NCBI GenBank assembly: GCA_965603825.1
Contig: CBFDEM010000036.1
Span: 248,001 to 312,000 of the forward strand
DNA length: 64,000 bases
Source of the DNA: Blepharisma stoltei ATCC 30299
Taxonomy: Eukaryota; Protista; Ciliophora
Direction: 5' to 3'
Shown here: positions 45,078 through 64,000 of the stretch, in pieces
How positions within the stretch are numbered: the first letter of the stretch is position 1
How the letters are laid out: each line of letters opens with the position of its first letter
Translations under genes and position numbers: made by a program
The notes under the pieces: generated by a model
Told to the model about the DNA's origin: nothing
Databases searched by the model: none
The model's input: the letters and a program-made list of their open reading frames with translations, nothing else

Positions 45078-46247
45078 TTAATAAGTATGAGAATATTTTC
45101 TTAAGGCTATAATTAAAGCCATAAGAAGGATAAAAGCTGGGCAAGCAAACACGACTGTCATAGATAAGATGTGCGTACTATTTATATAAAATGAAGTTTT
45201 TCCACAATAATATGATGGCTTTTCAATAGGTGTTTTCAATTTTTCGATAGTTATTAGTTCACTTTGAAGAATATTCCCAAACGAATCTCTTATTGCCATT
45301 TCAATTGTTCTTGAATTTCAATCAACTTCAAGAGTACCATAATTAAATTCATAAATTCTAGGTCCAACATTATTACCAAAATGCAAGTCAAAGGTACTTA
45401 AAAAGAGCCCAATATAACCAAAAACTGTGTAAGCGGTATGAGTCATACCACTTGAAGTTACTTCATAAATTGTGTATTTATTGCAATTTTGTTTTAATAT
45501 TTCTCCAATATGGACATCGCCTGACAATAAAATTGCTCCAGGGACCTTTTCAAGATTTTTCATCAATCTGTTGTATGATTTATCGTGCCATCTTTCTGTA
45601 GGCCCTAATCGATCTTGAACTGTTATTTGCAAGCCATTTCCGATAATTGTTATATCGCCAGGATTTTTAAGTTCTTTTTCAAGCCAATTTCACTGCTCTT
45701 CGCCTAAAGAGTCTCCATCAGTATCTTTTTTATTATCTCTGAATCATCTTATATCGATCAATATAATTTTAATCCTTTTTCCATTATTTCCAAACGTGTA
45801 AGATTGATACAGCCCATCATGATTTCATCTTTCACTGTTGTTTTCTCCCAAAAACTCAAGAAAAAGCTGTTTTGATTCATTTTTCATAGAAAATGTTTTA
45901 TCCCCATCATTAATTCCATAATCATGATCGTCTCACACTCCACTGATCATTGAAGTATTGATAAGCTCTTGGTATTCAGAAATATTCTTAAGCTTATTAT
46001 AAAGCATTCTTCAGTTCTCAATATTATTAGGAAATGATATAAAGTGCGTGTAGAGAATATCTGCATATACAGCATCCCCAAGCCATAAAAAGAGATCAGG
46101 TTTTCATTGAGAAATCGAATGAAAAATCTCAGGATTTTTTGCACGATTATGATGATGACATGATCCAAAAGCAATTTTGCTTATTTCTTTTGTCTGATCT
46201 ATAGGAAGAGCTGCAGCGATAGCAGTAAAGAGTAAGACCAAACTCAT
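45078..46247 (-). CDS. PhoD-family alkaline phosphatase with signal peptide and C-terminal TM
   Basis: IAFGSC, WLGDAVYAD, GV[TGA=W]DDHDYGIND, LGEEQ[W], LLSGDVHIGE, EVTSSGMTH; single frame from ATG 46247. Confidence 0.93.
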
Positions 46248-46299
46248 TCTGATAAAATTTCTTTTTAATTAAATATGTTGCAATTATTATAAACACTAA

Positions 46300-47391
46300 T
46301 TATAAGTCGTTTGCCAAAAATCTATGCATCAGAGCCTCAGATGGAGTTGGTCTTCATTCTGGGTTAAATCTCAAAATATCTGTTACGAAATTCCTGAAAT
46401 CAATATCAGGAATTAATTCCTCAATCGAAGCAGCATTTTCAACAGTCTCAAAATCTGAGCTATTGCCGCATAGCTCTGGCCAATTCAGCTGATTTCTTTT
46501 ATTAAAATACACTTTAAGCTTTTTTCCACTCGCTTTTATCATTTTCGTGGGAAATCTGCCAAATAATTTTTCCATCAAAGCTAAATGTGCATAATCATCT
46601 AGTAATGGAAAAAGCATTTTTCCTGTGTAAAGCTCAATTAAAATGCATCCAAGAGACCACATATCTGAGCTCATGCTCCAGCCTGATTGAAGAATCACTT
46701 CCGGTGCGCGGTAATGTCTTGTGCTTATAGTTGTTGAATGATGGTCGTTAACGAATGTTGCGCCTCCAAAATCTATGATTTTTACATCTGTGCTTGCAGG
46801 TCTATACAGTTTCTAAATAAATTTTACTCTTTGAGGGCAATATTTATATTGATCATTAACAAGTAATATGTTTTCTGGCTTTAGGTCAGTATGAGTCAGT
46901 TGGTGTTTGTGCATGAAATTTAAAGATTCTAGAATTTGCCTGCTAAAATCTTTGATTTCATTGACTGTGAATCCTCTGAAACTGTTTCTCTCTATTAGTG
47001 AAAACAAGCTCCTCCCCAATTTTTCAAAAACGATACAATAATGGTTTTCAAAAGGGAAAGCATCCAGTATTTCAACAATATGAGAGTTGTGGTCAATGTC
47101 AAGAGAATTTAGCATTTTTAAGGTTTCTACTTCAGTTTTAGCTTCATTTACATATTCCGGGACCTGCTTAATTATTTTCATTGCTTTTATTTTTTTGTCG
47201 CATAAATCCCTCACTTCCAAAACCCTGCCAAAGCTCCCTTCGCCTAAGTACCTATTGATTATATATTTTCCTTTTATTATGAAGCCTACCTCCCATTGAT
47301 AATGATCTTCAAAACTATCGTCAACGGAAGCGTCTCTGTAAGCAGACTGGTCGAATTCATGAGGGATGTACAATTCTCTACAAGTATACAT
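46300..47391 (-). CDS. CLK/LAMMER dual-specificity kinase
   Basis: LGEGSFGRV, HTDLKPENIL, IIDFGGA, STRHYRAPEVIL, AHLALMEK; intron 46813-46827; TGA at 46354 read as W. Confidence 0.93.
46813..46827 (-). other. 15-nt intron GTAAAATTTATTTAG
   Basis: Joins kinase subdomains VIb and VII in frame. Confidence 0.93.
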
Positions 47392-47746
47392 TTAATTAAT
47401 TGTAACGAAATGGCTATTTGATAACTTATTTGGACAGATTTTTTATTAAGTTTTGAATTTCTACGGATATGCCAGAAACATTTATAATCCATTTATTAAA
47501 AATTATCTCAAAATTTACTAATTTAAATTTGGCTGTTTCCATAATTATAAGAATTCAAAAATTAGCTATTTCCAATTAATTTTACAAGGCCTAGCAACAG
47601 TTTCTAAAAGAAGTGCATGAAAATAATTAGACTTTTTATCCCAAATGAAATGTGAGGTCTATCGGCAGCTAAAGTCCTTAATATTTATAAATTTGAGACC
47701 TCATTTTGCACATAATAGCTTAGTCATTGAAAAATGTAATCACAAT

Positions 47747-48754
47747 ATGGAAGGCAGCAAGAAAAAAAAGACCGCAATTCTTTATGCTTACAATGGCTCT
47801 CAATTCAATGGTAGCCAAGTTCAAAACCGTCACGAAGGAACAAGAACAGTTGAGGAAGTCCTTGAAAAAGGCCTTTTCGAATCTGGCTGCATATCTCAGG
47901 ACAATTATGGCAATTTAAGCAAAGTGAAGTGAAGCCGCGCTTCAAGAACAGACAAAGGAGTGCACGCACTTTGCACAGTTGCAGGTCTTCGTATGTTGTG
48001 AGCCCCAAAGCCAGATAACGAAATTATCGATGAAATAAATTCACATCTTCCATCTGATATTCGAGTTATCACAATTAAACTGGTGGCTAACAAATTCAAT
48101 GCCAAGAATAACACAGATTACAGAGAATATGAATATATTTTCCCTTTTAAAGCCTTATTCCCAGATGAAGAATTTTCTCTGGATGTAGTCAAAAGAGTCA
48201 ATGAAATGACAGCAAAAATTCAAGGAACGCACTCATTCCACAATTATTCAAGAGATATCGAAATTAACACACCTCAGGCCAAAAGATACGTAATTAAATT
48301 CGAGGCTTCTACAGAGCCTGTTTTATATGAAGGAAAACCGTATTTAAAGTTTACTTTTATAGGGCAAAGCTTTATTTATCATCAAATTAGAAAAATGGTA
48401 GGAATGATAGCTTCTATTTTACTAGGGAAGTATAATATGGAAGCAATTGAAGAGTCTTTCAAAAACCCGAAATTTTATGTGCCTTTGGCTCCTGCAGAAG
48501 GGCTTTATTTAGCAAGAGTTCATTATTCAAAATATAATAGGAAAATGTCTCACAGACCTATTATTATAACTGAGGAAGAAGAGAAAAAAATAAAGGAGTT
48601 TTTTACCACACATATTTTGCCGACGATATGCTCTAAAGATGAAGTTTTCAGAGCATGGGTTGATAGAGAGTTTAGAGGTACAGAACAAAATATTGCGAAT
48701 GAGGAGAACAAAGAAAGTGAATCTGAGTGTGAGGATAATAAATCTGATAGCTAA
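47747..48754 (+). CDS. PUS1: tRNA pseudouridine synthase, TruA/PUS1 family
   Basis: YNGSQFNGSQ, [W]SRASRTDKGVHA, REYEY, GTHSFHNYS, GQSFIYHQIRKMVG, PLAPAEGL; two TGA read as W. Start taken at ATG 47747. Confidence 0.9.
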
Positions 48755-48842
48755 TAAGACATTAAATACATGAATAAAAATAATTAAATTAAAAACTGAT
48801 AAGTAATATGAATCAATAGTAATGGTAAACGATATAAATGAT

Positions 48843-48847
48843 AAAAA
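48843..48847 (-). terminator. RNA polymerase III oligo-T terminator
   Basis: T5 immediately after the tRNA discriminator base. Confidence 0.8.
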
Positions 48848-48919
48848 GGGCCGCTCCGGGAATCGAACCCGGGACCTCTCGCACCCAAAGCGAGAATCAT
48901 ACCACTAGACCAAGCAGCC
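48848..48919 (-). tRNA. tRNA-Pro, anticodon TGG
   Basis: GGCTGCTTGGTCTAGTGGTATGATTCTCGC-TTTGGGT-GCGAGAGGTCCCGGGTTCGATTCCCGGAGCGGCCC; cloverleaf with A and B boxes; followed by TTTTT. Confidence 0.97.
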
Positions 48920-49099
48920 TCACGTAAGTTATTACTGAAATTAAATTTATATAATAATTAGTTTAGCCATTATGTTTTAATATAAAATTAATAATTTCAC
49001 TCTTCATTTTGAAATCTGCAATCTATATAAAGAGACTCTTATCTATTTACAATTTAATTGACTATATCTTTTAATTAGTTTTATTTCATTATATTGAAT

Positions 49100-49549
49100 A
49101 TGTCGAACCAAACTCAACAAACAGACTTTGTTCCAAAAAGATATGGTCTACAATATTCTCCTCCTTCAATTACACTTGAATATTTTGTGCCTTCCAAAAA
49201 GAAACTCTATCATCACAAAATGGAGCTAAGAGAACTTGATCCAGCCCATGATCCTGCTGATTGGTTGGATTATCTAAGGCAAAATCATGGATTATATATA
49301 GATCCACGAATTGTAGATGAATCACAGTTAATTAATTTAATTGAACATCTTCAAAGCCAGATTTCTTATGGGGGGATTGATTTTAACAATCTTTCTCCTG
49401 AGGAAATTGAAGAATATAAGAGACAAGTTGATGAAATGAATAATTATGGTCAGAATGAAAATTATTACTTATATGGAAATCAAGAAGAGTATTCTGATGA
49501 AGAAGAGGCTAGCGATTTAGAAATTGATTTCGATTTTAAATTAAAATAA
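49100..49549 (+). CDS. CEP19: CEP19-like centriolar/ciliary protein
   Basis: PKRYGLQYSPPSITLEY...KKLYHHKM and DFNNLSPEEIEEYKRQVD resemble the conserved CEP19 blocks; ATG at 49100. Confidence 0.72.
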   Translation: MSNQTQQTDFVPKRYGLQYSPPSITLEYFVPSKKKLYHHKMELRELDPAHDPADWLDYLRQNHGLYIDPRIVDESQLINLIEHLQSQISYGGIDFNNLSPEEIEEYKRQVDEMNNYGQNENYYLYGNQEEYSDEEEASDLEIDFDFKLK

Positions 49550-50006
49550 ATTAAGTGCTATAAAGTATATTTTGATTGTAGATGAACTACTTACCATAGA
49601 ATTTAATATCTATAGGCAATTGTGAATTATTAAAGCATCGCTCAAAATTCTTTTATTTGAGTTAGATATAACCCGAGTGCAATTGCGATTTTTGATCTTT
49701 CCCGGTGGTAAATAATATTTTATAAACCAACTAATAAAACTTCCATCTTGCAGGACACTTGCTAAAAGGTTTTTGCCGTGTGTGGAATTGGTAAAATCAG
49801 CATTAGTTGGCTTGGCTAACTAGAATCTTTCACATCTGAAAGCCCAGGAATCCTGAGCCAAAATTGTGTCGGGACTATATAGAAAAGACATTAAAAATTT
49901 AGTTGATAGAAAACTGCCTTAGTTATTTATATTTATGCATAGTAGTTGCATCTAATATCTTGGATTTTTTTCAATTAAAAAAGATAATTTTATTTTGTAT
50001 AAAAAT

Positions 50007-51506
50007 ATGAGTAGCTATGCTATCGACGTGACTAATAGCCGAGTCAAAGAAATCATGGAAGAACTTGGAATAGAAGAAAATGAACTTCTAAACAAGTAAC
50101 TACCAAATAGGACTCTAGAAGATTTTGCCGATGCAAGAGTAACCTCCGAAGTTCAGCAGCTTCGATTTGAATATTACAGCAAAAAACTCAAAGAGACAGT
50201 CAAGCGCATTCGCGACGTCTTAAAAGACAGAACTATGACAATAATCAAGCAAAATAGTCTACCTGATTTGCCTCAAACCTACAATAGTGTTTCACTATCC
50301 ACCGAAAGAGTAACTCCAAGACTTCAAGATATTGCAAAAGCTGAAGAAGAACGCCTTAACAAGCTCAAAGAAATGCAAAAGCAGAAGCTAATCAATACCT
50401 TGGCATGGCTTGAAAAAGTTGACGAAGCTGAAAAAAGCTTCACAAGCCCCAAAAGTGCTTCATCGCCTAGACTAAGCCCAGGCCCTTCTACTACAAAAAG
50501 TCTAAAATATAAAGCAAAAATCGAATCTTTTAAAAAAATCCAGCAAGAAAAATTCAAAGAAAAGAGAAAAGAGCAGGCAGAAAAACAAAAAAATCTGTAT
50601 AACAAAATCATCATGGACATGAAATTCCACAGTGAAAGAGAAAAATTAATTGAGCAGCAGAAAAAAGAAATAGCAAAAGAAAAAGATGAAGCGTTGAAAA
50701 GAAAGCAAGAAGAAATCAAAGCTATAAAGGAAGGGGAAGAAATATTAAATGAGCATATAATTCAGGAGCAGCTTGATTCTTTGCAATCAAGAATTATGAA
50801 GTCAGAAGAAAAGTATGCCACTGAAAGACAAAATAAATTATCCAAAACACTTGGACTGAGAAAATTTTGGGATCATGTGCTCGGAAATCTTGACAGGCTA
50901 AAGCAAACCCATGAAGTTGAAGATGTGCTAAAATTAATTGCAAAGCAGGAAAAAGTAAAAAAGAGAAGAGAGCAAATAAGGCAAAAGCTGGAAGAAGAAG
51001 TGAACATAAGAAGGGAAAAAATGGAAAAAAGAAAAAATGCAGCTCATACCAAAGTAGCCAATGATGAAAAAGAGCTGTATAAGAAAGTCCACTATTTGGA
51101 AAAAAGGCTGACTACGTCCCAAAAGAACTTAGAATCCAAGCAAGAAGAGTGGAAAAAAGAAGTAATGCTAAGAAAAGAACTTCAAAGACTCAAAGAGCTT
51201 GATGGAGTTACCAAAGTTGAAAGAGCCAATAGGAGATTGGTAAGCAATATTTAGAAAGCTAAAAAACTGCAAATGCTTGAAAAGCAGCTAATGACAAGCC
51301 AAAGAATTGATGCATTGAAGTCTGAAAGAGAAATGGTTTTGTCCAAGAAAAGGGAGGCTGCGACGAAAGAAATGATACAAAGAGAAAAAATGAAAGAAAT
51401 TTTTGCGATTGTTTGCAGATCACCAAAATCAAAAACTGCCCAAGAGCAGCTAAGGATGCTTGATATTTTGAAAAAGCCTTCTTCAGAAGGTGAAGAAGAA
51501 TCATAA
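50007..51506 (+). CDS. K/E/Q-rich coiled-coil protein
   Basis: ATG 50007; introns 50096-50110 and 51240-51254 join three exons in frame. Confidence 0.82.
50096..50110 (+). other. 15-nt intron GTAACTACCAAATAG
   Basis: Removes an in-frame TAA. Confidence 0.87.
51240..51254 (+). other. 15-nt intron GTAAGCAATATTTAG
   Basis: Removes an in-frame TAG and joins ORF 51273..51506. Confidence 0.9.
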
Positions 51507-51665
51507 TTAATATATTTATACAACTAGCATTTGCTATATTAAGCCATCTAAACTTGAACTTTTTTGTCTTGCAATATAAATTTAAGTTTCATAATTTCCA
51601 CACTTAAAATAAAATTCTTTCTGATATAAGACCCGCTTAAATATCAGTTATAATTAATAAACTTT

Positions 51666-52589
51666 ATGAATATACAACTGCTTTGGCTGCTAATTTCGCC
51701 AGCTCTTTCATGCCCAGTTTACACCTGCGCTTTAGATACAGACCCTCTGCCAGGCAACAAAGTTTATACTTTCGATTCCGCTTCCAATCAATACACAATG
51801 CAAGCTTGCCAATATTCTTATCTGACCTCAGATCACCCGAAAAACTGGGGAACTGAGGATGGCTATTGCAAGGATTTTCCAGACATTCGAAGGTGGGCAT
51901 CGCGCACTTACCAAGAGTATTATGAGTTTATACTTCTAGGAGAATATACAATTTGTGATCCTGACAGCACTTCAAAACTATGTGATTACAATAGCAATTT
52001 AGAATGCTACTTTAACTCGACAATGGGAAGCTACGCATGTGGTAAAACATTAAATTCAGGAGACGATTGCGCTTCATCTGTTGCACCTTGCCCATACAGC
52101 CATGTTTGCAACCTTGGAAGGTGCGTTGAGATGTTTACCTTGAGTCTTGGCGATGAAGCAAACAATGTAAAAGCTTGCCCTGGAGGGACAGAACTGAAAA
52201 AAGTTGAAGAAAAAAAGGTTTGCGACATTGCTCCAGCTAGTTTTGGATCAATTCCAAAGAAATGCCAAAGTAGCGATGATTGTGCAAATTATTTTACTAC
52301 TGATCTGACTGATTGTGTATGTGGGATAAACTCAGAGGGGCAATCATACTGCCAGCTGTTTCCTGGAGATGATCCTTATTTGAAATACTATGAGGCGGTT
52401 AAGACGCGTACATTTGACGATATGGTTTACTGGCAGTTTGTAAGTGAAAATTATGGCTATTTGCAAGGGAGCATCCCTGAATGCCTCAGCAACGTTTGAA
52501 AAGATTATGGAGAGTATATAAAGGTAGACCAAAATAATGCGTTTTTATTAGGATCTGCAGCAAGTGCCTTTATTTTAAGTTTAGCATAG
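51666..52589 (+). CDS. Secreted Cys-rich surface protein, likely GPI-anchored
   Basis: Signal peptide and many Cys. TGA at 52497 read as W exposes a hydrophobic C-terminus NNAFLLGSAASAFILSLA, then TAG. Confidence 0.85.
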
Positions 52590-52690
52590 AGTTTATACAG
52601 TGGGAATATAAAATATTGGATAATCATTAGTAAATTAGTTCATTATAATACTTCACATTGCCATTGTGATTTGATAATTTTAAAAAAGCC

Positions 52691-52933
52691 ATGAAGTCTG
52701 CGTATGTAATCCCGTATCCTGAAGGACCCAATACACCTGACGATGGCGTCAAACCCAGATCTATCCTAAGAAAATCCACATGTGAGCCGAAGAGTTTTCG
52801 AGTCGTTACCAGAGCAAGTACAATTGATAAAAAAGTGTCTTTTAAAGATCCCGTCCATGAGCTGTATGTAGTAGAGCCCATTATATATAAAATGCCAAGA
52901 AAAGAAGCGAGCTGCACATGCACAATGTTTTAA
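52691..52933 (+). CDS. 80-aa microprotein with SILK-like, RVxF and CaaX motifs (candidate PP1 regulator)
   Basis: RSILRK, KKVSFKD, C-terminal SCTCTMF. Confidence 0.75.
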   Translation: MKSAYVIPYPEGPNTPDDGVKPRSILRKSTCEPKSFRVVTRASTIDKKVSFKDPVHELYVVEPIIYKMPRKEASCTCTMF

Positions 52934-53501
52934 ACTAGATAAAAAAGATGTAAAAAGAGTTTATATCAGATAAATGCAAGCCGACAAGTTAATCTGTGGA
53001 CTTAATTCGTTATGTAAATTATACACTAAATTTTTATTAACTTAGCGATGGCCCGAGATCAATTGGCTACTACTATTTGCATTTTGGATAAGCAATAATC
53101 AATTTAATGGACAAATATACCAAAGGTGGTTTTTCTATTTATCAATAAAATACTCAAGGATATGAAAACTCGAATAGTCCATTAAAAAATTATTTATTAG
53201 TCTATTAAATATCATTAGTAAAAATCTATATAAAGATTTTCCTGCAGTATGAAAATGGACGATATAACTGCAAAATTAGAGTTAATATTTAAAATTTAAA
53301 TATCCTTATTGATTATAATTTAAATTTTTTAAAAAATAGTGATTCCAAGCATATTTTTAATGGTCATTGGAAGGTGAATTATTATGGTGGCATTATTAAC
53401 AAAATCAAATAAAAATTAAATTTTAGAGGCTAAGAAAATCAAAATCCATTTCATAATTATAAATCCAATTTCTCAAAATCTCATAAGAAACCGAAAAAAA
53501 T

Positions 53502-56500
53502 ATGCAAAGAAATAATTCCTCTCAAAGCAGATACCTTACAACTCGTATCGACATCAAAAGAGTAATAAATGAAGAACTTGGAAAAAATAAAATTATACCT
53601 AGATCTGTAAAAACTTTTAGAGATGAATCGCGCAATTATTTAGCAAGCAAAGCTATCGGCAAAGAACTCACCCCTCTACGTAGCCTAGGCGCAGAAGAAG
53701 TAAGAGAACTTTTGAGAAATGAAAAGAAAAAGGAGCAGGAAAAATTTACATTAAATAAAAAGACACGGGATATTTCCTATTTTAAAGATACCTTTTTCTT
53801 ACAAGCTACCCCTTCAGAACCGATTTTATCTACGCACGATCTTCCGACTGATATCAATCATATAAAAAAGATTTTAGTTACAAGCGATTATAAAGGCGTT
53901 CCTACAGCTTATAGTCCATCAGGGTTTTCAAATCCTGTGCCTTGCAAGCGGGAGCATTGCGTAGAGCGCGCATTAGCAACTCACCATAATGCTGTTAGAC
54001 CAAGCAAAGCAAATATTCTTCCTTCAATTGCTGTTGAAACTGACAGAACTTATGAAAATCTGATGAGCACAATGACTCCTAATCCTGGTGATTCTCTTGA
54101 ACGGCTTTATTTAGGAAACCCAACAGGACGACAAGATATAGAAAATCTGTGAAAATGATTCAGTTTTATGAAAGCGAAATATGATAGCGAGAATAATGCT
54201 GAAGCTATTGAGGCAATATATGAAATTTGTAGTAGGGAAATTATAAGACAAGTTTCTGTTCAATGTGTGGAAAGAGGAACCTTATTGACTGAAGTCATAA
54301 TGAGATGGCCTCAAATTGCTAACAATAAAGTTGAGAAACTTTTAGATGAAATGACTCAGCTAAAAGTAAAGCATTCGATAGAACTGCAGGATTTGGCTGC
54401 ACAAAAAGATAAAGAAATGGCTTTATTTAAAGTTTCTGTACAGGAAATTAAAGATCAAGCACAGCTAGAAAAAGAGCTCAGAAAAAGTGCAGAAGAAAAA
54501 TTAGCAATAATAAAAAATAAATTAGCTGGCGTTGAACGAAAGTATGCAGCTGAAGAAGAATTATGGAAAAAAATCAGCCTACAAAAACCTGTTTTAAATC
54601 ACAAAAAAAATATTGCGAAAAGTCCTCAGAAAGTGAGTATGACTTCAGAAATTAAATGAAAGGAAGAAGAACGGCAAATAGAAAACGTCATAGATATTCA
54701 AGCAATTGAGGCTTTAAAAGGAATTATGACAAAGCCTGAGCTTTTAGAAATCAGCAAAAAGCAGCAAGAAGAAGAGGAAAAATTCCAAGAAAAAAACGCT
54801 CAAACTGATTATAGTGAAATGTTTTTATTCGAAGATAAAGAAACTCAAACAGAAGTTTTCGAAGAAGAAGCTTGGAAGATTATAAAAACTGCTGAAGAAA
54901 GCAACTTGCCTACAGACAATGCTGGAATTTCAATAGGCATAGTAGATGAAACCCCTAAAATCCCTAATTTGAAAGAGGCTATTAAAGGGATAGGAGAAAA
55001 TAATAAAAATTCTCTTGATAGCGACAGGTCAGAAAAGTTCATTACAGCTTTTACTATCTCAAATATTGAAGATTTTAGAGAAGAAAGAGAAAACTTAGAT
55101 AAATCAATTAATGAAAGCCAAGAAAATGATGAAGAAATAAGTGAAATTAAAGATGAAGTTAGCATGATGAGAAGCCAGATATCAATGAAATCCTCAGAAA
55201 GTAATGTAAATTCACCAAGAAACGACCAATCTGCATCAAAGAAAACTCCGATAAAAAGTACTCAAGAGTCTAGGAAGCAATCGCTCACTAAGCCTCACCA
55301 AAAAATGAAAACATTACAAAAAAATCCACAAACCCCAGAAAAAGCCCAAACTCCAAGAAACTCTCAAAGTAATGCATCTTCATTTAAAAAATCTACTGGA
55401 AAGAGATCATCGGTTTCTTTCGTAGATCAACTCGCTTCGCATCTTCACTCAGTTGATAAGCTTTCTCAAGAAGAAAGATTAATGTTCTTTGCCAAACTTT
55501 CCCCTGAAGACAAGCAATATTTCGTTAACAAATTTTCACAAGATGACAGACAAATGATGATGGTGAAAGAAGCCTTGCTTAAAGAGATCACTGAACAATT
55601 CGAGCACAAATCAAAAGAACTTGCCAGCTTACTCTCAGATCTAGAAAAGAAAAAAGATATTTTAGAGCTACTAAAACTTGAATTGTATGCTAAGCAAAGT
55701 GAGCTTGAAAATTTTCAGGAATCCATCAAACCCGAGCATCGTGAGGAGCATGAAAGAAGCGAAACAGTTCCGCCTATCCGAGTTTCTCCTGCTAATGAAT
55801 CCGAAATATCTAAAGATCTTTTAGCGGTTAAAAATTCTTCCCGAGATAGATCAGGCTCTTTTGACTCAATCTCAAGCAACAAAGCTATATATTTAAAAAT
55901 TCCAGACCAGCCAAGCAAGAACTTCCAGTTCGAAAGCAACCCAAACTCTTTTACTGAATTAATTCCTTCAGGCTCAGATTTGGGGTCATGAAAAGCTGGA
56001 TGGAGTAGTGGGTATGAGAAAGGAAGAAGCGAAGGTATAAAAAATGGAGAAAAGCTCGGATTCGAAGACGGATATACAGAGGGGTATTTAAAAGCCATTC
56101 AAGAAGCAAAAGGAAGCCAGCTGAGCTCTGATACATATGCAGAAGATATTTGGCAAGATGAAGAAAACAAAGAAGCGCAAGAAAAAAGCATACAGCCTGC
56201 TGAGGAAATCGAAGACCAAGACTCAGAGCTTGATTTCGCTTGTGAAGGAAAAAGACTTCCTTTAGACTATTTCTTTGTCGAGAAAAACAGAGACAAGAAA
56301 AAAATCAAGGAAATTACCAAGTTTATGGAATTCCATTTCCATAAGCCGTTGTATCTTACCCAGCCAAAGAAGCCAAGTGTCGCTCCACAGTTGCTGAATG
56401 CCCTATTGACTAAAAAGACATCTATCATAACCAAAAAGGCTACAATGAGCAGAAGGATGTGCAGCAGGCTAGCTTCTTCAATTTATCAGGATTGCTACAC

Positions 56501-57545
56501 AAAATTCAAAAACGGTGAGCAGTTTCCAAGCTTATTTGAAGTCACTTATGACCAATTTATACATAAATATGGACTAAAAACAGTAGCTGAGAAAAAACTA
56601 ATCGAATTTATAGCCTCACTAATGAAATATTCAGAATACGCCCGACCTTTGCTATTTCTGAGATTTGCAGGGGCTTCTTCCAAAATTGATAACCACGATT
56701 ACAGCAAGCTAAGCTTCTTATTTTACCTGCAAAGCTTGAATTTTATGCTGAACGCCAAGATTGGGATAGTCGTCGGGTATGATGATTCTGCAGATCGACA
56801 AATGTTTCCGACTGTAAGAGCTATTGAGTGCTTAAGAGACAAATTTGATGGAATTTTAGAGAGAAGCATAATTACAGCTTTAATCTCAATTGTAGAACAG
56901 CGAAGCATTACTGATCCTAAAAGGATTAATTCCGCAGGGTTGGTGGAATTGGAGTTTTTGCTTGAATTAATGGTGGAGAACTATGAAAATTACCAAAATG
57001 CTATTGGGGAGGGCATAGTGTTTATAATTTCTGCTCTAGGAATAGAAAGACAAGAATTCATCACAAAGCAAGAATTTTATATTTTAACCCGTCATGTGTC
57101 GCCAGGAAAGCTTCGGGACGACGAAAACACAACCAAAGATTTTGTTCCAAGGCTAAAACTTCATCCAGAGCTGATATCTAACCAATTAGATAAAATGGAA
57201 AAAATTAACTTCAGCGATTTGATCAGCATATGCATTGAAAGAAATTTATTGTCTATTACTGACGTCAAGAATTTCTGTAAATTTAACAAAGAATTAACAC
57301 TGGATCAGGCTAAAGAAGAAATGAATAAAAGTAAAGACGAAATTTTTGAAATGCTGGAAGTGATTAAAAATTCGCCAGAAAAGAAATGGAAAAGCTATGA
57401 TGATTATATTTTTGAAGAGAAGCTGCGTCATCTATTAAATATCAGACATACAGAAAAGCCGAATTACGTTCTTTTTAATTGGAAGCTCCTTGAAGCAGAG
57501 TTAAGGAGAATTAAAAAAGATTATGTGCAAGAAAACCAAAATTAA
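53502..57545 (+). CDS. Large (1347 aa) protein: axonemal dynein light chain (p28-like) domain, coiled coils, GxxxG repeat, C-terminal helical domain
   Basis: GNPTGRQDIENL[W]K[W]...REIIRQVSVQCVERGTLL; four supplied ORFs share one frame joined by TGA. Confidence 0.85.
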
Positions 57546-57827
57546 TAAATAAAATTTTATCATTTATTAATCTTCAAGCATGTTTGAAATAGTTTCATCT
57601 ATTGAGCAATTCTTTTAAGCTCACGCCGAATAATTTCTCTCTTATGCTCCACTTCTCACTCTCTTTGCTCATTTGAGCTAGCACTATTTACAGAATATTA
57701 TCTGCTGTCCTTTTTTTTAAATGAGGTTTCATAAAGCAACTTTTCTTTATGTTGAGCCATGAAATTATCAGTTGTGAAGGCAGAAGAAGAATTGATCTAC
57801 TATTTATTTATAAATAAAAACACTAAA

Positions 57828-58904
57828 TTATAGTAAATTTGACAAAAACGATCATTTTTGGGAAGTCTCAGGCTCCAAAAATACTTGTTTGCACAGCGGG
57901 CACTTCTTCTCACCACTTAAAACCCAGGTTCTAATGCAGTCAACGTGGTGGATATGTCCACATGTAATACGGCTGCATCTGAGATTTGTTAAGCCTTCTC
58001 AACAAATGCAGCATCTTTCATCTTCAAGGTTAATTAAATCTTCCTGAGTCAGCGGAGGGTAGTTTTTTATAAAATCGTTCATAAAAGTATTATACTGAAA
58101 ACATTTTTTGGTGATCGTAAATAAATTTGAGACAAGCTTTTGGAGTTTCATAATGACAAAAAAAGCTTGAAGAGAGCTTGAAAGAAACCACTCGGCATAA
58201 AAGAATACCAAATGAAGCCATCTGCACACATTTATTGAAGTCTCTGTTAACTGGATAATTAATTCGTGCTTTCGGCTCAGAGCTAAATTATGTTTAAACA
58301 CATACAATGTAATTAGGCTTTCCTTTAACACCAAAATACCGTCGTAGTTCAGAAGTAAGATCAAACTGAAACTTGCATAGGAAAATATGCTAGCTGTTCC
58401 AATGATAAAAGCCGCTGCTAGCCCTAATGGAATAAAAATCAACTCTTTTAGATTTCTTACATGATTATTCTGAAATCTAAGCTTTGCAGTAATGCTGAGG
58501 ACTCTACAAAAGCAATAGTAAACAAAAGTTGAACCCCATATCAAGATTTCGATGCCATTATTAGAATTATTTCCAAGATCGAGGATTGCGAGCTGCAAAA
58601 GCATTGATCCATTCAAAATGTAATCTAAAATTTCTTTTCTTTCCATAGAGTTCAGAGTCCCAAGCAAAGTATAAAATAATAGATGAGCTAAATAAAAGCA
58701 CCAAAGCACGAGAGAGAGAAATATCAGAAAGCCAATTGATAAATTTGTTTTGATCAAGTAGACTGTAGGAATCAAGCCTGATGAAAAAAACGATGGGAGC
58801 AATAAGCATGAGAGCAGCAGTGCATCCATTGATAAGGCTCAGACAGCAAACTTCCAATTTACTAATGTTTCAAAGATGCTATCAGGAAGTTCAATTAATC
58901 GCAT
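57828..58904 (-). CDS. Multi-TM RING-H2 E3 ligase (HRD1/AMFR/RNF145-like)
   Basis: Several TM helices, then CCIC[TGA=W]E...CGHIHHVDCIRTW...CPLC; ATG 58904; TAA 57828-57830. Confidence 0.85.
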
Positions 58905-58963
58905 TTTCTTTTAAATTACTTATAATTTATTTAAAATACGAAATACAAATTAATTAATGTAAA

Positions 58964-60835
58964 TTACTGTCCAAATGATTGGCATTTAAGTTTCTCTAAA
59001 TATGAAAGCCATTGCACTTTGGATTCAGGTCTTCTATTAAAATCAGCATTCGCATCAGGAAAAAGACTCAAAATTAATGCTTCAGTATTTGACTCTGAAA
59101 ATCTTTTTGGGCCAAAAGTTGGGATTTTTTTGATTCTTGGCGCCGATTTTTTGTGTAATTGGCTGGCTTTTTTTATGATTTCAGAGAATTTTTCTTTTTT
59201 TATGAGATTTTGATTTTTAGTTTTTATTTGAAGCAAAGCTAATTGCATATCTCCGAGAAGGTCATCGATATTGTTCGCATCGATACTGTTAATAGAAGAA
59301 TTCGGAGAATTTAAGCGATTGAATTCAGTTGATTGCCTTGGAATTGAGCCTGCACTATATCCATGAGTATGTAATGATTTTTTGGATCTATATGAGGATT
59401 TAGGAGAAGGCAGGTTAGAAACTGAAGAAACGTGCTGTGATGTATTATTTTCTGTGTATTTTATTGATACTGAATTATTTGAACTCATTTTTTCAACTCA
59501 TGAATCGGGAGGCAGCTTAGTCTTCATAATTTTATAAACTTCATAGCATCTATCACAAACATGCACAGTGTCATAATATCGAGAAATGTGTCTTGGAATG
59601 GCAGATTTTTCGTTTTTTTCTAAAATATTCAAAGTTTCAAGCAGCTCGTCAACTTTTAGCTCCACTAAATGTGTTTGATCAGATCCCACATCAGCCAATT
59701 CTAAAAGCTCTTTTCCTTTCATAAGCAATTTATATGGAATTTCATTTTTATTTTCTCGAGCCTTTTTCTTATTTCTTTCTTTTAATAAATATTCAACTCT
59801 CAATGACAATTTCACGTTGCTAATTTCTTTTTCTCTTCCTCCCTGATAGAGCTTGCGAACTTCAGTAAAAAGATCTTCGATTTCAGTGTCGCTTTTTTCA
59901 ATTTGCGCTTCACTCTTAATTATATAATTACAAAAATCTCCTGGGCATGGCTTTTTGTTATTTCTAAATATACGATTTTTCTGCATGTTGTATGTAACAT
60001 TTTTCGACATAAATGAAAAATTCCCTTTCGGTGTGGCAAGAGAATTAAAAATGCTCAAAGCTGGACTTCTTGATCCAGGAGACAGAGCGTCTTTTGATAC
60101 TTCAGCAGAGCTATTTTTCACTGTGATAACTTTTTGCGCTAAGCAGTATTTGCTTCCAACTAATCATAAATTCCTATTTTCGTCTTCCAAAAAACATAAA
60201 ATAATTTTTTGAATTTTATATTCAGAATTTTTTTCTATTGCTTCGATAGCGCAGTCGCACATCTTTTTAAGATCACTTTGGTACTTTATTCCATTGAATG
60301 GCACTTTTATTGCTTTTTCTTGCTGCTCATAAGTTTTGTAATATGTATATAAGCTTTTTCCATCGCTTTTTTTATATTCAACTAGCAGCCGACTTGATGG
60401 CTCTCCACGAGTTTTGATAAACAGCTGAATAGCTTCTGAGGTGCCCAAGCCGCCTCCTGCGATTTTTGAAATGGCTAAACTTTTTAAAAGAGGCTGCATT
60501 TGGTTGTGAGAAATATAAGTTGCAACTATCCCATTATAGTTATCTAGGTTATGATGCGGAGAAATTAAATTCAAAGGAGCTTTTTTTGGTAGAGGTTCCC
60601 CTGTGAAACGTGATAATAAAATATCGAGTTTTGTTAAATCATCAGATCTTTTTCTTATAAATCCTTTGGAATCAGTATAGTATCATTTCATACCCATCGA
60701 GGAACTGCGATCAGCCAGAAGAGTATCTAATAGAGAAAGCTTTGTAGGAAATAGAGCTTGATCTTTTCAAAGATGAGAAATTATTCAAGCACACTCGAAC
60801 TCGTGAAAAGAACTTTGTATAGGAGTTTCTTCCAT
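58964..60835 (-). CDS. Hypothetical protein with split Cys motifs (CPGDFC ... VCDRCY)
   Basis: Three supplied ORFs plus an upstream segment share one frame with TGA=W, from ATG 60835. Confidence 0.8.
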
Positions 60836-61369
60836 TTTAAATTATCATTTTAGGCAGCTTATGCTCTTGCTCATAAATAAAGTATTTATAAAGTTTAAGC
60901 AGAAAACTATCTCGTAAGCATGCAATTATCACTCATATAAGTTCTTAAAGTGTAAACTATATAATAGCTGATAATTTTATACAATCAAAAATACTTTAAT
61001 TTAGTTAGAAGAATTAAAACTTCTGTAAATTTTTACATTATGGAATATCAATAATGGACAAATTTTTATTTTTAATGTTTCCTCTAAATAATCTCAAAAA
61101 ATATAAGGAATATAGACAAATATAAAATGCTTTAAGCATAAGTAAGCTTGGCTTCCTAATTATATCCTTTTTGCAAGTTGCTATGTATGGGTTATAAAAT
61201 AGTGTTAATTCTTTAAGTTAGAAATAAGTGACATATAAAATAGCTAGAAAACTCAATATAATTTATGATTTTGAAGATGAGTTACTACCAATACCTCATA
61301 TATCGGTTTTCATTTTCATATTTAATATCCGTTTTTTATCTAAAAATGACGATGGTTATAAAAATAAAA

Positions 61370-62614
61370 ATGCTATACCGAGCTCTTCAAAGATGCATGT
61401 CAAGCTCCGCAAAAGCTCCATTTGAAATTACTGACATGGCTGCTTTTATGTTCACCCTCCAAAAAAGCAACTCTGGCTCCCTCAATCAAGTTCTTCAGTC
61501 CATCCTTGACAGCAAATTGAATTTAACTCACATTGAATCAAGGCCTGCATCTCTAATAGACGCCGATAAAGGGTTTACTTTTATAGTCGATGTTGAAACT
61601 CCAACCAGCTCTTCGTTGGAAAATGTATGCCAGAAAATCAAAAAAGTTTGTGGTGACGTCACGTTACTAGGGAGCCTTGAAGTCCCATGGTTTCCAAGGC
61701 GCTTTAATGATATTGATGGAATGCAGCAACTGGTAAGACCTCTGCATAGCGATCATCCAGGCGTCAATGATCCGGTTTATTGGGCTAGAAGGCAAGAACT
61801 TGGAAATATCATCAGAAGCTGCACTTTAAGCAGCAAAATTCCTATTATTCAATATACTAACGAAGAATCTCAGACATGGCAAACAATTTATCATGCCTTG
61901 TCGCCACTTTATAAAAAAATAGCATGTGAGGAATTTTTACTCAATTTCAAGGAAATGGAAAATAAAGGGCTTATAACCGAAAACGAAGTTCCACAGATTG
62001 CAAATGTCAACAAGTATCTGATGGGGAAGACTGGGTTTCAGCTCAAGCCAATCTCAGGCATGGAAAAGGATCGTGATTTCTTGAATTGTTTGGCATTCAG
62101 AGTATTCCCTACAACTATCCACATGAGACATCATTCACAACCTTATTTCAGCATAGACCCAGATGTGGCACATGAAGTAATAGGACATGCTCCAATTTTA
62201 GCGGATCCAGAGTTTGCTGAATTTGTGCAAGAAATTGGACTTGCGTCTTTAGGCGCTACTGAAGAAGACATCGAGAAATTGATGAACCTTTATTTCTATT
62301 CAATTGAAATTGGACTAATTATGAATCCAGCTGGAGACCGAAGAGTATATGGAGCAAGAATTTTAAGCTCGGTTGATGAAATTCATCACGCACTCAGCAT
62401 TCATCCTGAACTAAGACATTTTGATCCTTTCCAAGCTTGCAACGTAAAGTATCACAGAAAAGACTTGCAGAGCATGTATTGGTTTTGTGAAGATTTCAGA
62501 GAAGCCAAAATTTTGATGGAGAGATATGCAAGCACTTTGCAAAGACCTTTCAATGCAACTTATGATAGAGCTCAAAAATCGATTAAAGTTAGCCACAAGG
62601 TAAAGTCTTGGTAA
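61370..62614 (+). CDS. Biopterin-dependent aromatic amino acid hydroxylase (PAH/TPH family) with ACT domain, divergent
   Basis: LNLTHIESRP, VPWFPR, DHPG.ND..Y..RR, RDFL..LAFRVF, iron ligands PDVAHEVIGH and YSIEIGL. Start uncertain: in-frame ATGs from 61265; 61370 preferred. Confidence 0.93.
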   Translation: MLYRALQRCMSSSAKAPFEITDMAAFMFTLQKSNSGSLNQVLQSILDSKLNLTHIESRPASLIDADKGFTFIVDVETPTSSSLENVCQKIKKVCGDVTLLGSLEVPWFPRRFNDIDGMQQLVRPLHSDHPGVNDPVYWARRQELGNIIRSCTLSSKIPIIQYTNEESQTWQTIYHALSPLYKKIACEEFLLNFKEMENKGLITENEVPQIANVNKYLMGKTGFQLKPISGMEKDRDFLNCLAFRVFPTTIHMRHHSQPYFSIDPDVAHEVIGHAPILADPEFAEFVQEIGLASLGATEEDIEKLMNLYFYSIEIGLIMNPAGDRRVYGARILSSVDEIHHALSIHPELRHFDPFQACNVKYHRKDLQSMYWFCEDFREAKILMERYASTLQRPFNATYDRAQKSIKVSHKVKSW

Positions 62615-63161
62615 GACATGATTAATTAAAATTTATAAAAAATATTCTGATTATCATATATGCAATACAGCTTTAGAAAATTTCAAAATCACTCATTTTA
62701 TAAAATTTTATTAAAATCTCATGGTCTCTCATAGCTCAAATAAGTGTTTATACAGATACTCCAATGAATATTAAAGGTCTATAATGGCTATTTCTTTCCA
62801 TAATTCCCCTTACCATATTCAATGATTCTATATCAGATTTAGAAATTTAATCCATCCTTAAACAGACAATTTCATATGCTACGAAAATTTTATATAATAA
62901 GTCAATAGATTAAAATATTTATAATTTATGAATCCTTATAGTTTGCATAGCAATTAATGGCTTCTTAATAATTTAGCAATTTTATTTTAATCCTAATATT
63001 TACTACCTCTTAGCTCTCTTTTTTAAAAAGTACAGTAAAATAAAATAATTATATAAATTTGCCCAAAATTTTTGGTCCCATCCTCATCGAGCAATAGCAG
63101 TCATTCGATCTAGGTACGAGAAATTAGGATTCTATATAAATTAATTAAAGTAAATATCGAT

Positions 63162-64000
63162 TTAATTATTTCCACCTTTATCTGAAAATGAATCACTTTG
63201 CTTTTGCTGCGTTTCTGCTAGCATTACTTGCCTAGACTCGTCAGTTCTTTTATAATACGCAAAGCAAAATATGATTGCCATTGGTATAAAAAATGCATTT
63301 GATATCAAAATTGTATAAGGCCCATAAGACGAACATATGGCAGGCTCTTCATGAATATCTGCAGGAGAATCACAAGTCTTTGCTAACTTTGCTTTGCTTT
63401 GGTTAAACCAGATAACTGTAGCAGTGAAATTGAACATTGCTATGCAGATTGCCCAACACTATATAAGTTTTACATAATTCATAGCAGAGAGTCCATAGTC
63501 TCTTTTATTGATGAGGTGGAAATAAGTTTTAAGGAAAAATATTGAACTGATAAGTCCAAGACATTCAATTACAACATAAGCCTCATAGGCTTTAGATAAA
63601 TGCTTATAAAGATTGCAAGTGCCTGCAGAAGAGTCAATGGAGCAATAGAAAGATGATAAACATCCTCAACTTATATAGGAAAAATCTTTTTCGCAGTTAT
63701 AGCAATTTGAAAGACCACCTTCTCAAAGACTGCTGTCTGAATTTCTCAAAACCCATCTATTTGATAGTGCTATAATGATGGTTACTACGCCAGATGCAAA
63801 AAGAAACCCGACGATCCACATTCAGTAGTCAAATTTATATTTTCTAAAATTCATTTGCATATCGGTAGAGCTCTCAATGGATTTTAAAGTAGGCTGTCTA
63901 TGCAGCACAGTCACCAATAGGATGAAAGACAATATGCACATTAAACAATTAATTTTTGCAATTTCTGGCCCAGTTTCTGATTGAAGTGAAACGTCGTCAG
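63162..64000 (-). CDS. Multi-pass membrane protein with a claudin/PMP22-like module, 5' end outside the window
   Basis: Open frame with TGA=W: TM-SNRWV...L[W]EGGLSNCYNC...C...C-TM-TM-TM; intron 63459-63473. Confidence 0.75.
63459..63473 (-). other. 15-nt intron GTAAAACTTATATAG
   Basis: Removes an in-frame TAG, giving AMNYCWAICIAMFNF. Confidence 0.88.

Follow-up and report, generated by a model that had tools for sequence, protein, structure and literature searches.

The eukaryotic aromatic amino acid hydroxylases (AAAHs) characterised to our knowledge use Phe, Tyr or Trp as substrate and have near-invariant pocket motifs. One gene in the window, a stretch of 64,000 nucleotides of Blepharisma stoltei DNA, encodes an AAAH in which these motifs are rewritten, which raises the question of what its substrate is. 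Phe at residue 313 of tryptophan hydroxylase 1 (TPH1), equivalent to residue 326 of phenylalanine hydroxylase (PAH), favours Trp. A sequence-only reading had noticed Phe at this position in the query, and proposed that the gene might encode not the housekeeping PAH but a tryptophan 5-hydroxylase of independent origin, feeding the mating pheromone gamone 2 or other specialised metabolism. We find that the interest of this gene lies in its rebuilt pocket and that the pheromone claim is unlikely.

The open reading frame at 61370-62614 on the forward strand encodes 414 aa with zero internal stops and zero TGA codons. Its product matches Pfam Biopterin_H (PF00351) over aa 106-410 with an E-value of 1e-104, scoring 350 bits against a curated cut-off of 22.7, while its ACT match is weak and under the Pfam cut-off. 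The gene, which belongs to a group that we call clade B, is organised as follows.

61370-62614, forward strand: coding sequence of the clade B AAAH paralog, 414 aa, intron-free (ORF translation, Pfam, RNA-type contigs)
61370-61423, forward strand: mitochondrial-presequence-like N-terminus, amphipathic, with 3 basic and 0 acidic residues (a rough prediction by a simple rule)
61433-61672, forward strand: ACT regulatory domain, spanning roughly aa 22-101 and retaining the LTHIESRP motif (Pfam, model, orthologue alignment)
61685-62599, forward strand: Biopterin_H catalytic domain, aa 106-410 (Pfam, structure search)
62615-62644, forward strand: 3' UTR of 30 nt, ending at the poly(A) site (one contig, run X1)

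Contigs from probable RNA runs, whose RNA status is a guess, are confined to 61372-62644 and leave the upstream flank empty; they place a poly(A) tail at 62644 and contain no intron. The AlphaFold model of the query (mean pLDDT 80) has full-length PAH as its best match and hits rat PAH in Foldseek with an E-value of 3.5e-35, with the PAH fold and domain order retained; confidence is lowest in the substrate loops (pLDDT 51-68). The gene is thus a real, intact, expressed and conserved AAAH. An upstream in-frame ATG at 61265 was rejected as the start because orthologues begin at 61370 and contigs at 61372 or later. A hidden intron behind the short lid loop described below was discarded as well, since the contigs are colinear with the gene and the orthologues have the same deletion. 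Of 35 ORF starts taken from the window as background, none passed the presequence rule, and by this rough rule the N-terminus resembles those of the clade B orthologues and of the B. stoltei PAH pair. Most of the B. stoltei AAAHs, and perhaps the indoleamine dioxygenase IDO-I, have similarly basic, acid-poor, presequence-like N-termini, a pattern that suggests a mitochondrial location for the whole AAAH/IDO-I metabolism.

The B. stoltei assembly surveyed (41.46 Mb, 64 contigs) contains nine AAAH genes in three clades, A, B and C; the eight other than the query are database proteins labelled Blepharisma stoltei. Clade A (L003 and L004) has W326, F331, YTPEPD, G346 and an aliphatic residue at 379 and is a canonical PAH pair, likely the housekeeping PAH. 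The query as sole or housekeeping PAH can therefore be dismissed. The sequence-only reading was right on this point, and the host is indeed a Blepharisma, B. stoltei, on which its pheromone link depended. Clade B comprises the query and L002, which are 84% identical, arose from one segmental duplication and have many neighbours in common. Clade C (L005-L009) consists of five short genes without an ACT domain. Positions 46000-64000 of the window are paralogous to C57:466950-488191 through many collinear gene pairs of 50-85% identity, and this shared block is an old segmental or whole-genome duplication.

In a 39-sequence tree, clades B and C each received 100/100 support, and clades A, B and C grouped together, separate from non-ciliate enzymes (97/94). 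Both B and C were recovered in an 85-sequence quick tree, with B nested among heterotrich PAHs. Among the heterotrich AAAHs, clade B sits on a long stem with short tips, and its nearest relatives are heterotrich PAHs. Grouping of clade B with animal TPH was rejected in an AU test (p 1.1e-7), so the proposed independence from animal TPH holds as a matter of descent. The same test did not reject a grouping of clades B and C (p 0.48). Clade B is best read as an ancient duplication in heterotrichs within the PAH lineage of ciliates, and the subfamily is also found in Stentor. A word search with the query returned relatives at 46-76% identity; Stentor coeruleus SteCoe_6777 and SteCoe_26930 (OMJ90797, OMJ74205) carry the same FSIDPD, YFYS, GAR and YHRR motifs. 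The pocket is not specific to Blepharisma and is therefore older than the Blepharisma-Stentor split. Further clade B loci in other assemblies have some of the same neighbours as the Stentor locus, among them an ABC transporter and CKS. A profile search over 1.84 billion representatives yielded one clade B cluster, no outside protein with the signature and no clade B relative outside heterotrich-like sources; the second match, P0211, is of TPH type and has two domains, and G346R is paired with E280D in none of the remaining 146 matches. The ESM Atlas returned generic AAAH clusters only, below 0.9. A gene for 4-hydroxyphenylpyruvate dioxygenase (HPPD; L010:1770-2918) is found at a distance of 1.9 kb from P0003, a clade B orthologue; conserved HPPD linkage was rejected, as it occurs at one locus only and B. 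stoltei has its two HPPD genes elsewhere, on contigs C23 and C18.

To follow what has been kept and what has been rebuilt, residues were mapped by alignment to rat PAH and are written as PAH number = query number. In PAH, substrate recognition involves H285, S349, R270 and T278, the ring is lined by P281, W326 and F331, a water network involves Y277, G346, S350 and E353, and the pterin is contacted by G247, L249, S251 and F254 (PMC8003416). The catalytic features of the query are listed first.

62057-62080, forward strand: pterin-binding loop, PAH 247-254, GMEKDRDF for GLLSSRDF, with F254 kept, L249 replaced by E and S251 by D (alignment)
62120-62128, forward strand: Y268 replaced by H251, invariant in clade B, and carboxylate-binding R270=R253 at 62126-62128 (alignment, residue counts)
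62171-62188, forward strand: HEVIGH, with iron ligands H285=H268 (62171-62173) and H290=H273 (62186-62188) and pterin-site E286 (rat PAH alignment)
62306-62308, forward strand: third iron ligand, E330=E313 (rat PAH alignment)

The iron triad, R270, D282, S349, S350 and E353 are invariant across 11 clade B members, and F254, E286 and Y325 are retained in 10-11 of them. The pterin site of the query keeps G247, F254, E286 and Y325 and carries L249E and S251D in a loop that varies across the clade, positions 247-249 being invariant in heterotrich PAH. The most divergent member, P0010 (L011:8001-9242), has Phe for E286, while its residues 326 and 379 are Val and Ser; its dN/dS to its sister is 0.18, and it is possibly a non-catalytic offshoot.

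Around this conserved centre, the substrate pocket differs at the following places.

61721-61756, forward strand: equivalent of the Tyr138 lid loop, 4 residues shorter than in PAH, TH and TPH (every clade B member spanning the loop)
62147-62164, forward strand: FSIDPD for YTPEPD (Y277F, T278S, P279I, E280D), with P281 and D282 unchanged (rat PAH alignment)
62294-62311, forward strand: W326 replaced by F309 (62294-62296), E330=E313, and F331 replaced by I314 (62309-62311; rat PAH alignment)
62357-62380, forward strand: G346 replaced by R330 (62357-62359), with S349, S350 and E353 retained (alignment, residue counts)
62456-62458, forward strand: V379 replaced by R363, at a discriminating loop position where PAH has Val, TPH has Ile and TH has Asp (alignment, residue counts)

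The alignment to rat PAH places the iron triad, the carboxylate Arg and every motif change that the sequence-only reading had listed exactly where it put them. Its pocket list was right in all entries; it gave no weight to the GAR motif and missed R363, H251, the change of H264 to P247 and the four-residue deletion in the Tyr138 loop.

Residue counts compared the 11 clade B members with 165 other AAAHs, 15 TPHs among them. G346R, E280D and Y268H each occur in 11/11 clade B members and in 0/165 of the others, in which position 346 is Gly or rarely Ala or Ser. Within clade B, Y277F, Ser at 278 and P279I/M are likewise universal (11/11), V379R is found in 10/11, position 326 is Phe in ten members and Val in P0010, and just one member retains F331. 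The combination of G346R, V379R, Y277F, Y268H, P279I, E280D and a short lid loop was present in no other AAAH examined. Purifying selection acts on the clade B signature. The B. stoltei pair in this clade has a dN/dS of 0.064, by which a decaying pseudogene is rejected; the value is 0.058 for the PAH pair and 0.055 to the nearest outside orthologue.

Compared with tetrameric PAH (Dictyostelium 5JK5, rat 1PHZ/5FGJ; TIGR01268), the query is alike in its ACT and Biopterin_H architecture, fold and 2-His-1-carboxylate iron site, as well as in R270, D282, S349, S350, F254 and E286, but differs in W326F, F331I, G346R, V379R, Y277F, P279I, E280D, Y268H, L249E and the short Tyr138 loop, with 36-41% identity. 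Its NCBIfam scores show no lean: 342.7 for TPH (cut-off of TIGR01270, 705.5), 336.9 for PAH (337 against 705 for TIGR01268, far under the cut-off) and 335.8 for TH. Since the pocket has been rebuilt with two arginines, the substrate is probably other than the usual amino acids. A conserved, expressed subfamily in which five near-invariant positions are replaced and the iron site is kept points to an undescribed substrate and would bear on both AAAH specificity and heterotrich aromatic metabolism. Our literature search, with most subscription journals outside its scope, found no account of clade B, though hydroxylases of Blepharisma may have been studied before, and nothing on PAH G346R or W326F/F313W.

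The best explanation, which we hold tentatively and at somewhat less than an even chance, is that clade B is an iron- and pterin-dependent hydroxylase for an aromatic acid that lacks the amine. The enzyme would remain a monooxygenase of the non-haem Fe(II)/tetrahydropterin type, probably mitochondrial, with a new substrate. Iron held by H268, H273 and E313 would activate O2, the pterin would stack on F237, and the substrate carboxylate would be gripped by the unchanged clamp of R253, D265 and S333. From the water network that PAH builds around its substrate (Y277, G346, S350, E353), the Tyr hydroxyl is gone and an Arg has been added, so that an alpha-ammonium group should be disfavoured and a neutral or anionic group favoured; R330 and R363 would face the pocket. 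F309, I314, R363 and the short lid loop would reshape its ring end. The likeliest substrates would be phenylpyruvate or phenyllactate, 4-hydroxyphenyl- or indole-pyruvate or -lactate, or N-acyl amino acids, in a pathway that Blepharisma and Stentor may have in common, and not in the making of the pheromone. Mandelate 4-monooxygenase (EC 1.14.16.6) and anthranilate 3-monooxygenase (EC 1.14.16.3) are microbial activities in which an enzyme with tetrahydropterin and iron hydroxylates an aromatic acid other than an alpha-amino acid; the likeness is one of activity, to the kind of chemistry proposed. The wider proposal, that clade B abandoned amino acids for an amine-less aromatic acid by placing an Arg at the substrate-amine site and that clades A, B and C are an independent three-way heterotrich radiation, is possible but on balance doubtful.

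A hydroxylase that still acts on free amino acids with another specificity or regiochemistry, converting Tyr to DOPA as an analogue of tyrosine 3-hydroxylase (TH; TIGR01269) or Phe to m-Tyr, would make clades A, B and C a parallel to the animal PAH, TH and TPH trio. The changes in clade B fall at the same positions that mark TH (264, 277, 278, 322, 379), with Ser at 278, a residue other than Tyr at 277 and a charged residue at 379 shared between them; the Stentor orthologue has its top NCBIfam score with the TH model, and the ACT domain is retained. However, TH has Asp at 379 (TH D425) and HSPEPD and keeps G346, P279, E280, W326 and F331, whereas clade B has Arg at 379 (R363 in the query) and has changed all of those, the query reading FSIDPD and F309. 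We consider this explanation unlikely.

A dead or weak iron-binding paralog that senses a metabolite or regulates PAH oligomers as one of their subunits, with R330 filling the substrate site, likewise has a minor share of the probability. Constraint is relaxed at the pterin-contact positions 247-251 and 322, P0010 lacks E286, the ACT motif has been retained better than in the B. stoltei PAH pair, and Arg replaces a residue that is Gly, or seldom Ala or Ser, in other AAAHs. A relaxed pterin loop together with the loss of E286 in P0010 would also fit lost catalysis. Against this, none of the three iron ligands and no residue of the carboxylate clamp varies between Blepharisma, Stentor and the more distant clade B members, F254, E286 and Y325 are nearly always kept, and clade B is under constraint equal to that of PAH.

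A tryptophan or indole-amino-acid hydroxylase for general heterotrich metabolism (e.g. serotonin), not bound to pheromone, appears improbable. Like TPH1/TPH2 (TIGR01270), the query has Phe at TPH1 313 and the catalytic core, F326 is present in ten of the clade B members, a single origin of F326 for clades B and C was not rejected (AU p 0.48), and a smaller residue at 331 with a shorter lid loop could widen the pocket. However, all 15 TPHs keep Y248, Y277, P279, E280, F331, G346 and I/V379, which correspond to Y235, Y264, P266, E267, F318, G333 and I/V366 of TPH1 (I366 in the TPH1/TPH2 comparison) and are replaced in the query by M, F, I, D, I, R and R; F326 is thus its lone TPH-type pocket residue. 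Hence the proposed TPH-type pocket does not extend beyond that residue. G346 and F331, both invariant in the TPHs examined, are replaced in the query, and the profile scores do not lean to TPH.

Gamone 2 is 3-(2'-formylamino-5'-hydroxybenzoyl)lactate, a product of mating type II that is common to Blepharisma species (PMC10892320, PMC9542385). In the B. stoltei genome, L020 (C58:332370-333353) is IDO-I with a 100% match. This enzyme reportedly prefers 5-hydroxytryptophan (5-HTP), for which an independently evolved tryptophan 5-hydroxylase would be the source; F326, the presence of IDO-I, the separate PAH pair, a TPH score that is nominally top by 6 bits and the keeping of two copies in B. stoltei speak for the query in this role. 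A sole PAH with the same substitutions in ciliates without gamone 2 had been named as a finding against the link; the presence of the same pocket in Stentor comes near to it, although gamone 2 is not known to have been sought there. Word searches, which give weak negatives, found no close IDO or clade C protein labelled S. coeruleus; no Pfam family matches the genes on either side of the query, with no pathway gene seen among the neighbours; and no paper joining Blepharisma, a hydroxylase and gamone 2 was found in the literature search. With seven TPH-conserved pocket positions altered besides, the same pocket in S. coeruleus and a better placed set of paralogs in clade C, the query is a weak and very improbable candidate for the gamone 2 enzyme.

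Clade C resembles the query in Phe at 326 (Tyr in one), Ser at 278 in most members and Met at 248, but lacks the ACT domain, carries S349G and retains Y277, P279, E280, F331 and G346. A clade C protein scored 271 with TPH, 222 with PAH and 241 with TH, with TPH 49 bits over PAH. The clade C gene L007 (C58:340062-340877) is on the same contig as IDO-I at a distance of 6.7 kb, and L006 (L006:1-2370, equal to C27:138327-140696) lies about 0.2 kb upstream of a same-strand PLP-dependent group II decarboxylase (PF00282). With the amino-acid pocket kept, a TPH lean and adjacency to IDO-I and a decarboxylase, clade C fits the gamone 2 pathway better than clade B, which redirects effort on gamone 2 among the nine AAAH genes to the clade C gene beside IDO-I. 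Contig C58 also carries another IDO-family gene (C58:201883) and a further clade C gene (C58:92397).

Elsewhere in the genome, the pterin toolkit includes five matches to the pterin-4a-carbinolamine dehydratase (PCD) family (C48, C50, C53, C18, C58) and GTP cyclohydrolase I (GCH1) matches at three places (C47, C51, C19), so families for pterin synthesis and recycling are present alongside the nine hydroxylases. One of the loci outside Blepharisma, L014 (1-11242), comes from the ENA GROS21-1 metagenome; its clade B gene is placed with those of Stentor (98/99), and S. coeruleus and L024 have the same gene order. In L014, TGA aligns with W in the L024 orthologues at least 8 times, and by this alignment its organism reads TGA as Trp. 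The clade C locus L026, from the same sample series, has in-frame TGA too, and the source of L014 may be a second heterotrich lineage in which UGA encodes Trp.
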